DNA from: Saccostrea echinata
Lineage: Eukaryota
Direction: 5' to 3'
Length of the DNA: 64,000 bases
Assembly: GCF_033153115.1 (NCBI RefSeq)
Contig: NW_026889803.1
Coordinates: 45,570,001 to 45,634,000 of the forward strand
Part shown: one piece after another, positions 9,664 to 9,829 of the stretch
Layout: each line of letters starts with the position of its first letter
Numbering within the stretch: the stretch's first letter is position 1
Notes under the pieces: model-generated
Told to the model about the DNA's origin: nothing
What the model saw: the letters and a program-made list of their open reading frames with translations, nothing else
Database searches by the model: none
Position numbers and translations under genes: made by a program

Positions 9664-9765
9664 TAACTAATCATTTATGTAATGTAATATTATTTCTATA
9701 TGTTTCAGGTATCAGTCATCCTTAGTTAATTAAAGAGTTACTCATTGGATGATGGTTATCATTTA
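9664..9765 (+). repeat. 5' LTR (102 bp)
   Basis: Identical to 15378-15479; TAA...TTA termini; ATTAAA at 9729-9734. Confidence 0.9.
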
Positions 9766-9776
9766 TGACTGATACC
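9766..9776 (+). promoter_or_regulatory. Primer-binding site TGACTGATACC, complementary to the element's own LTR (9708-9718)
   Basis: Immediately follows the 5' LTR; exact reverse complement of GGTATCAGTCA; lacks the TGG start expected for a tRNA CCA end. Confidence 0.7.
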
Positions 9777-9829
9777 AGTTCTACACAATTTGACAATTTT
9801 GGTACAAAAGACGATCTATACTCCCCAAC

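Follow-up and report, generated by a model that had tools for sequence, protein, structure and literature searches.

We found that a young, multi-copy Ty3/Gypsy-type LTR retrotransposon in the genome of Saccostrea echinata has no tRNA-type primer-binding site (PBS). Instead, the bases directly after its 102-bp 5' LTR pair perfectly with a site inside that LTR. About 40 related families, mainly recovered from environmental sequences, keep this pairing with different sequences. Therefore, self-priming of the type used by fission-yeast Tf1, in which the start of the element's own RNA primes reverse transcription, is the best explanation for this clade of marine-invertebrate elements (probability of about 0.8), as inferred from sequence comparison. 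The element lies in the window, which is the whole stretch of 64,000 nucleotides that was analyzed (assembly GCF_033153115.1, contig NW_026889803.1, positions 45,570,001 to 45,634,000, forward strand). Coordinates of its features are listed in the table.

Features of the element and its surroundings in the 64,000-nucleotide window
Positions	Strand	Feature	Basis
6204-6531 and 19212-19592		Two similar ~146-bp repeat blocks, each with a GACA-rich tail, about 13 kb apart on either side of the element	Repeat comparison
9659-9663	+	5' target-site duplication, TAAAA (one change relative to the 3' copy)	Six other copies show perfect 5-bp duplications at the same limits
9664-9765	+	5' LTR, 102 bp, termini TAAC...TTTA	Identical to 15378-15479; limits fixed by target duplications in other copies
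9664-9707	+	Putative U3, 44 nt, AT-rich, ending in the initiator-like TCAGG (9705-9709; A9707 is the putative +1)	Inferred from sequence and from the arm starts of related families
9708-9718	+	Putative self-primer GGTATCAGTCA, the first bases of R; T9719 also pairs, with the last LTR base	Perfect complement of 9766-9776; equivalent arms covary in relatives
9729-9734	+	ATTAAA, candidate poly(A) signal, used in the 3' LTR copy	Sequence
9766-9776	+	PBS TGACTGATACC, directly after the LTR	Identical in the 12 5'-LTR copies compared; 18 hits in the same genome span this region at 99-100% identity
9830-14041	+	Gag-Pol ORF (zinc knuckles, protease, RT, RNase H, integrase), cut short to 1403 aa by an insertion	Other copies have 1634 aa
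14000-14484		Foreign MITE-like insertion of about 485 bp inside the integrase C-terminal coding region, with terminal inverted repeats of roughly 22 bp (..CAGGAAACTAATTTTGTTACAG / CTGTAACAAAATTAGTTCCCTG..); not part of the element	Absent from the other copies, as checked against copy L031 of the same genome
14485-15235	+	Remainder of the Pol coding region after the insertion, to the original stop	Comparison with uninterrupted copies
15367-15377	+	Polypurine tract GGGGGAGGAGA	The motif GGGGGGAGA precedes the LTR in relatives
15378-15479	+	3' LTR, 102 bp	Identical to the 5' LTR
15480-15484	+	3' target-site duplication, TAAGA	Sequence
17502-18148		73-bp tandem array downstream of the element	Repeat comparison

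First, we examined whether the complementarity described in the initial annotation is real. That observation was confirmed, including the limits of the 102-bp LTR, the ATTAAA, and the AT-rich 44 nt before position 9708. The only long inverted repeat around the 5' LTR was 9708-9719 (GGTATCAGTCAT) with 9765-9776 (ATGACTGATACC), which matched 12/12 and were 45 nt apart. The right arm consists of the last LTR base plus the 11 bases that follow it, which is exactly where the minus-strand primer must anneal, and no TGG-type site follows the LTR. By simple arithmetic for uniform composition, a fixed 11-mer would match one of about 92 positions of the LTR with a probability of about 2e-5. When the window RNA was folded from 9708, the 12-bp stem closed R-U5. 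The genome (923 Mb) holds about 19 copies with 96-100% Pol identity and mostly identical LTR pairs, indicating that the family was active recently. Typical copies are 5316 bp.

Next, we analyzed whether the pairing is kept in relatives while the sequence varies, a test that had been set before the analysis. A sister family in the same genome (family B), with 55% Pol identity and LTRs of about 239 bp, has an unrelated PBS, TGAACACAGTC, directly after its LTR. The exact complement sits after TGTTTCAGAT and before ATTAAAG in that LTR, such that GACTGTGTTCAT pairs with ATGAACACAGTC at the same place as in the window element. Two copies of family B (L033+L038 and L034+L039, on one contig of this genome, C5, near 13.05 Mb and 2.25 Mb) share the same flank, and both carry a ~300-bp insert with a tRNA-like start (SINE-like) in the 5' LTR, so the locus looks duplicated within the contig. 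Relatives were abundant, as 1882 proteins were found at E<1e-30, of which the named ones came from Mya arenaria (85% identity) and Mytilus edulis (72-82%). Gag-Pol relatives at 79-87% identity (P0001-P0016 of the protein list) occur in Mya arenaria and in many unrelated sequencing runs and metagenomes, and a Mytilus edulis relative at 82% identity over about half the query region is also listed (P0100). This suggests spread between distant bivalves, possibly by horizontal transfer.

A scan of metagenome contigs gave 80 loci at 34-78% identity (numbered with L below). In these, plus the two families of the same genome, we found 40 distinct arm/PBS pairs. Each pair is an uninterrupted Watson-Crick run of 9-18 nt (median 13) without internal G-U pairs. 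Of the left arms, 38 of 40 end in CAT and 2 end in GAT, whereas the right arm always begins with the LTR-terminal A, followed by TG (TC in two families). Positions 4-15 of the duplex use three or all four bases, and arms of one family pair with the PBS of another for only 3.5 nt on average. Under the same search rule, 47 of 66 loci reached 11 nt or more, compared to 1 of 1060 (0.1%) dinucleotide shuffles of comparable upstream regions. RNAalifold on 13 families recovered a 14-bp closing helix in which 11 pairs showed compensatory changes. The covariation score was 0.632, compared to 0.225+-0.031 in shuffles (0 of 500 as high) and at most 0.26 when the partner was slid. Furthermore, within one group of almost identical elements, an A/G difference in the arm was matched each time by T/C in the PBS (L056 and L119 against L071 and L079). 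A few single copies (L069, L078, L101, L112, and L042) had one mismatch, as expected for decay after insertion. These results, therefore, indicated that the pairing is not due to chance.

The same comparison bears on a host RNA primer, such as a tRNA fragment or another small RNA whose 3' end is GGUAUCAGUCA. Copia-type elements use tRNA halves (PMC6317226), and a tRNA search of the window alone found no tRNA gene. However, the PBS does not start with TGG, two families in one genome have unrelated PBS sequences that each match their own LTR, and 40 families have 40 different PBS sequences that track their own LTRs. A shared host primer cannot explain this pattern, and we consider this alternative very unlikely on present evidence. 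Alternatively, the pairing could be a structural RNA stem, for example to hide the 5' poly(A) signal or for packaging or translation control, with something else as the true primer. The stem encloses ATTAAA in the predicted fold, and retroviruses have U5-IR and U5-leader stems near the PBS (PMC5445492, which cites this for RSV). Nevertheless, a purely structural stem would not need to sit on the priming site and would tolerate G-U pairs. The right arm lies exactly where the primer must anneal, since the base after the LTR defines the priming site, no other PBS-like site follows the LTR, and the uninterrupted arms and the matched changes between near-identical copies fit templated copying of the primer better than slow compensatory selection. 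This alternative is thus also unlikely.

We then asked whether the left arm could correspond to the 5' end of the RNA. The initial annotation had predicted a transcription start at G9708, which fits the initiator-like TCAGG at this position. In 22 of 40 families the arm starts exactly with an A after a pyrimidine, and in 35 of 40 such a step lies within 3 nt. However, the outer end of the pairing is 1-4 nt away from this step in some families, and in family B it starts 4 nt after the A of TCAG. A canonical poly(A) signal lies in the loop of only 17 of 40 families. Two raw oligo-dT RNA runs gave only 6-10 reads on the region, in addition to Logan contigs, too few for any TSS, poly(A) site, or primer to be seen, so that these data speak neither for nor against the predicted start. 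In the contigs of one public run of unknown type (X1), a 59-nt contig spans exactly 9707-9765 and a 56-nt contig matches 9707-9736 after 26 unrelated letters; the assembly graph therefore branches exactly at the predicted +1 base, for which we have no explanation. A short hairpin just before the PBS, recalling the U5-IR stem-loop that Tf1 requires, was visible within the last ~30 nt of the LTR in L057, L063, L067, L072, L074, L077, L083, L088, and L115 and at window 9747-9764, with stems that differ between families (GGG/CCC, GCG/CGC, GGATGAT/ATCATTT). However, the folding energies of the last 30 LTR bases were not better than those of shuffles over all families (mean z -0.55), and we do not claim this hairpin as a feature.

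On this basis, we propose that transcription starts at the initiator-like step (A9707/G9708), and that the first 11 or so bases of the RNA fold back over R-U5 onto the PBS. In this view, the element's RNase H would cut the 5' arm inside the duplex after ..CA, between A and U of ..CAU, and the CA-3' end, paired to the TG of the PBS, would be extended through U5 and R. In Tf1, the first 11 RNA bases pair with the PBS and RNase H cuts between bases 11 and 12 (PMC7175516; PMC4600332 for Tj1). From the standard model of LTR replication, the plus strand would copy the RNA primer, such that the PBS is rewritten from the RNA's own 5' end in every cycle. This rewriting would explain why the pairing is perfect without internal G-U pairs, why it ends where the transcript should begin, and why one change in the LTR arm is matched in the PBS. 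For the same reason, the outer limit of the duplex should be the RNA 5' end, which for the window predicts a start at A9707 or G9708. The LTR-terminal A followed by T is invariant at the junction (A/TG in 38 of 40 self-type families, A/TC in 2) and also appears as TA/TGG in the tRNA-type relatives L117 and L120, which suggests that the primer ends in CA-3', as a tRNA does, and that the first base made is opposite the last LTR base. Our analysis established the anatomy, the complementarity, and its covariation, whereas the start of transcription, the RNase H cleavage, and the priming itself are inferred. Self-priming could also occur in trans or from the 3' copy of R, with the arm of a second packaged RNA, or of the 3' LTR, annealing to the PBS instead of the 5' end of the same molecule, as the arm sequence is present in both LTRs. 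This cannot be excluded, although it seems unlikely because the outer limit of the pairing coincides with an initiator-like step in most families, which is expected only if the primer reaches the RNA 5' end.

The classification of the element was then analyzed. Pfam domains were found in the order protease, RT, RNase H, and integrase, and together with the LTRs, the polypurine tract, and the 5-bp duplications, they place the element among Ty3/Gypsy (Metaviridae) retrotransposons. Among solved structures, the RT is nearest to Ty3 RT (E 7e-29) and the integrase is nearest to foamy-virus integrase. No chromodomain was found even at E<=1 in the 1634-aa uninterrupted Gag-Pol, whose C-terminal tail is proline/serine/threonine-rich and of low complexity. 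The RT motifs are DAWNGYHS and KCVDD. The LTR ends are TA..TA (TAGAG..TCTA in relatives), whereas Mag A, Mag C, and Sushi have TGT..ACA (Sushi model TGTYANR..CNTNACA; PMC3601003). Steamer and Steamer-like elements of the Mag lineage share the same kind of host and have short LTRs (153-219 bp across Steamer elements), and MchSLE1 has a single ORF. However, Steamer LTRs start TGTAACA, end ..AAACA, and are followed by a 12-nt tRNA-Leu PBS, TGGTGTCAGAAG (PMC8905726), and MchSLE1 is described as having a tRNA-Asn PBS (PMC11046912).

The interpretation given in the initial annotation was, therefore, partly supported. Self-priming is strongly supported by comparison, and the absence of a recognizable chromodomain held. 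In contrast, the suggestion that Pol is Mag-like is not supported. The idea that the motif arose from a conventional PBS in inverted arrangement (TGGTATCAG on the other strand) applies only to this family, as we saw no such TGG in the other families, and it was rejected as a general feature. The suggested independent origin of self-priming is plausible, as judged within this lineage only, because tRNA-primed relatives share the odd RT motifs.

These relatives were examined further. All relatives share the RT motifs DAWNGYHS and KC[VI]DD, apart from two (L117 and L120) that have DAVDGYHA and KIVDD. They include eight loci, of which six (L070, L076, L084, L117, L118, and L120) carry ordinary TGGCGC.. 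tRNA sites with no complement in the LTR. L117 (263-380) and L120 (105-220), the most distant relatives, have LTRs of only about 100 bp ending ..TATA, followed by TGGCGCAATCG.., a normal tRNA-type PBS, and they share the ..TA/TG junction with the self-priming families. In an unrooted maximum-likelihood tree of 78 RT-to-integrase sequences, in which broken frames were read through with X, the eight loci were one side of a branch against the 70 self-type or unresolved rows, although support for that branch was only 79.8 (SH-aLRT). One switch of primer type within this lineage, in a direction that the unrooted tree does not give, is therefore enough to explain the data.

Self-priming itself is already known. 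It is established by experiment for Tf1 and is predicted for the Tf1/sushi group from fungi to vertebrates (PMC4600332). The members of this group (Tf1/Tf2 of Schizosaccharomyces pombe, Tj1, Maggy, Skippy, Cft-1, and sushi-ichi) are Ty3/Gypsy-type elements that likewise lack a tRNA PBS. In them, the bases directly after the 5' LTR are complementary to an LTR-internal site at the (predicted) mRNA start, with a duplex of about 11 nt and a primer made by RNase H cleavage within an RNA duplex (PMC7175516, PMC4600332). In the present families, the duplex is 9-18 nt and nearly always ends ..CA/T, the hosts are marine invertebrates, and tRNA-primed relatives sit in the same lineage. Self-priming has also been inferred from PBS/LTR complementarity alone for the Tcn1 clade and for the TAR lineage of plant Ty1/copia (PMC6317226), showing that the trait occurs outside Tf1/sushi proper. 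Those cases belong to other lineages and hosts, and TAR belongs to another superfamily, whereas here the inference rests on about 40 covarying families. Literature searches found no description of self-priming in mollusc or other metazoan invertebrate Gypsy elements, nor of this C-x-DD lineage, although most subscription journals were outside their reach and this is not proof of absence. Protein searches returned only unnamed or uncharacterized relatives that could not name the clade, and a text search for the CVDD motif found nothing.

A further reading is possible but tentative. A large lineage of marine-invertebrate Gypsy elements, defined by the C-x-DD RT motif and unrelated to the Tf1/sushi chromoviruses, may have switched once from tRNA priming to self-priming, keeping the same LTR/PBS junction (..A/TG) and a primer ending in CA-3' like a tRNA. 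In this reading, as the PBS is rewritten in each cycle, the outer limit of the duplex would read out the transcription start of every family. This would be an independent origin of self-priming in animals, with both states surviving side by side.

Self-primed reverse transcription is predicted, beyond Tf1, mainly for its fungal and vertebrate relatives and a few plant lineages. Here, the same solution is inferred in an abundant and evidently active group of bivalve and other marine-invertebrate elements that lacks the chromodomain and has different LTR ends. Annotation pipelines that look for tRNA-type PBS sites would miss or mis-delimit these elements. As tRNA-primed relatives sit next to this group, it gives a natural series in which to ask how a retroelement gives up its host tRNA. 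Giving up the tRNA could also let the element escape tRNA-fragment-based silencing, a defence described for tRNA-primed ERVs (PMC7472051).
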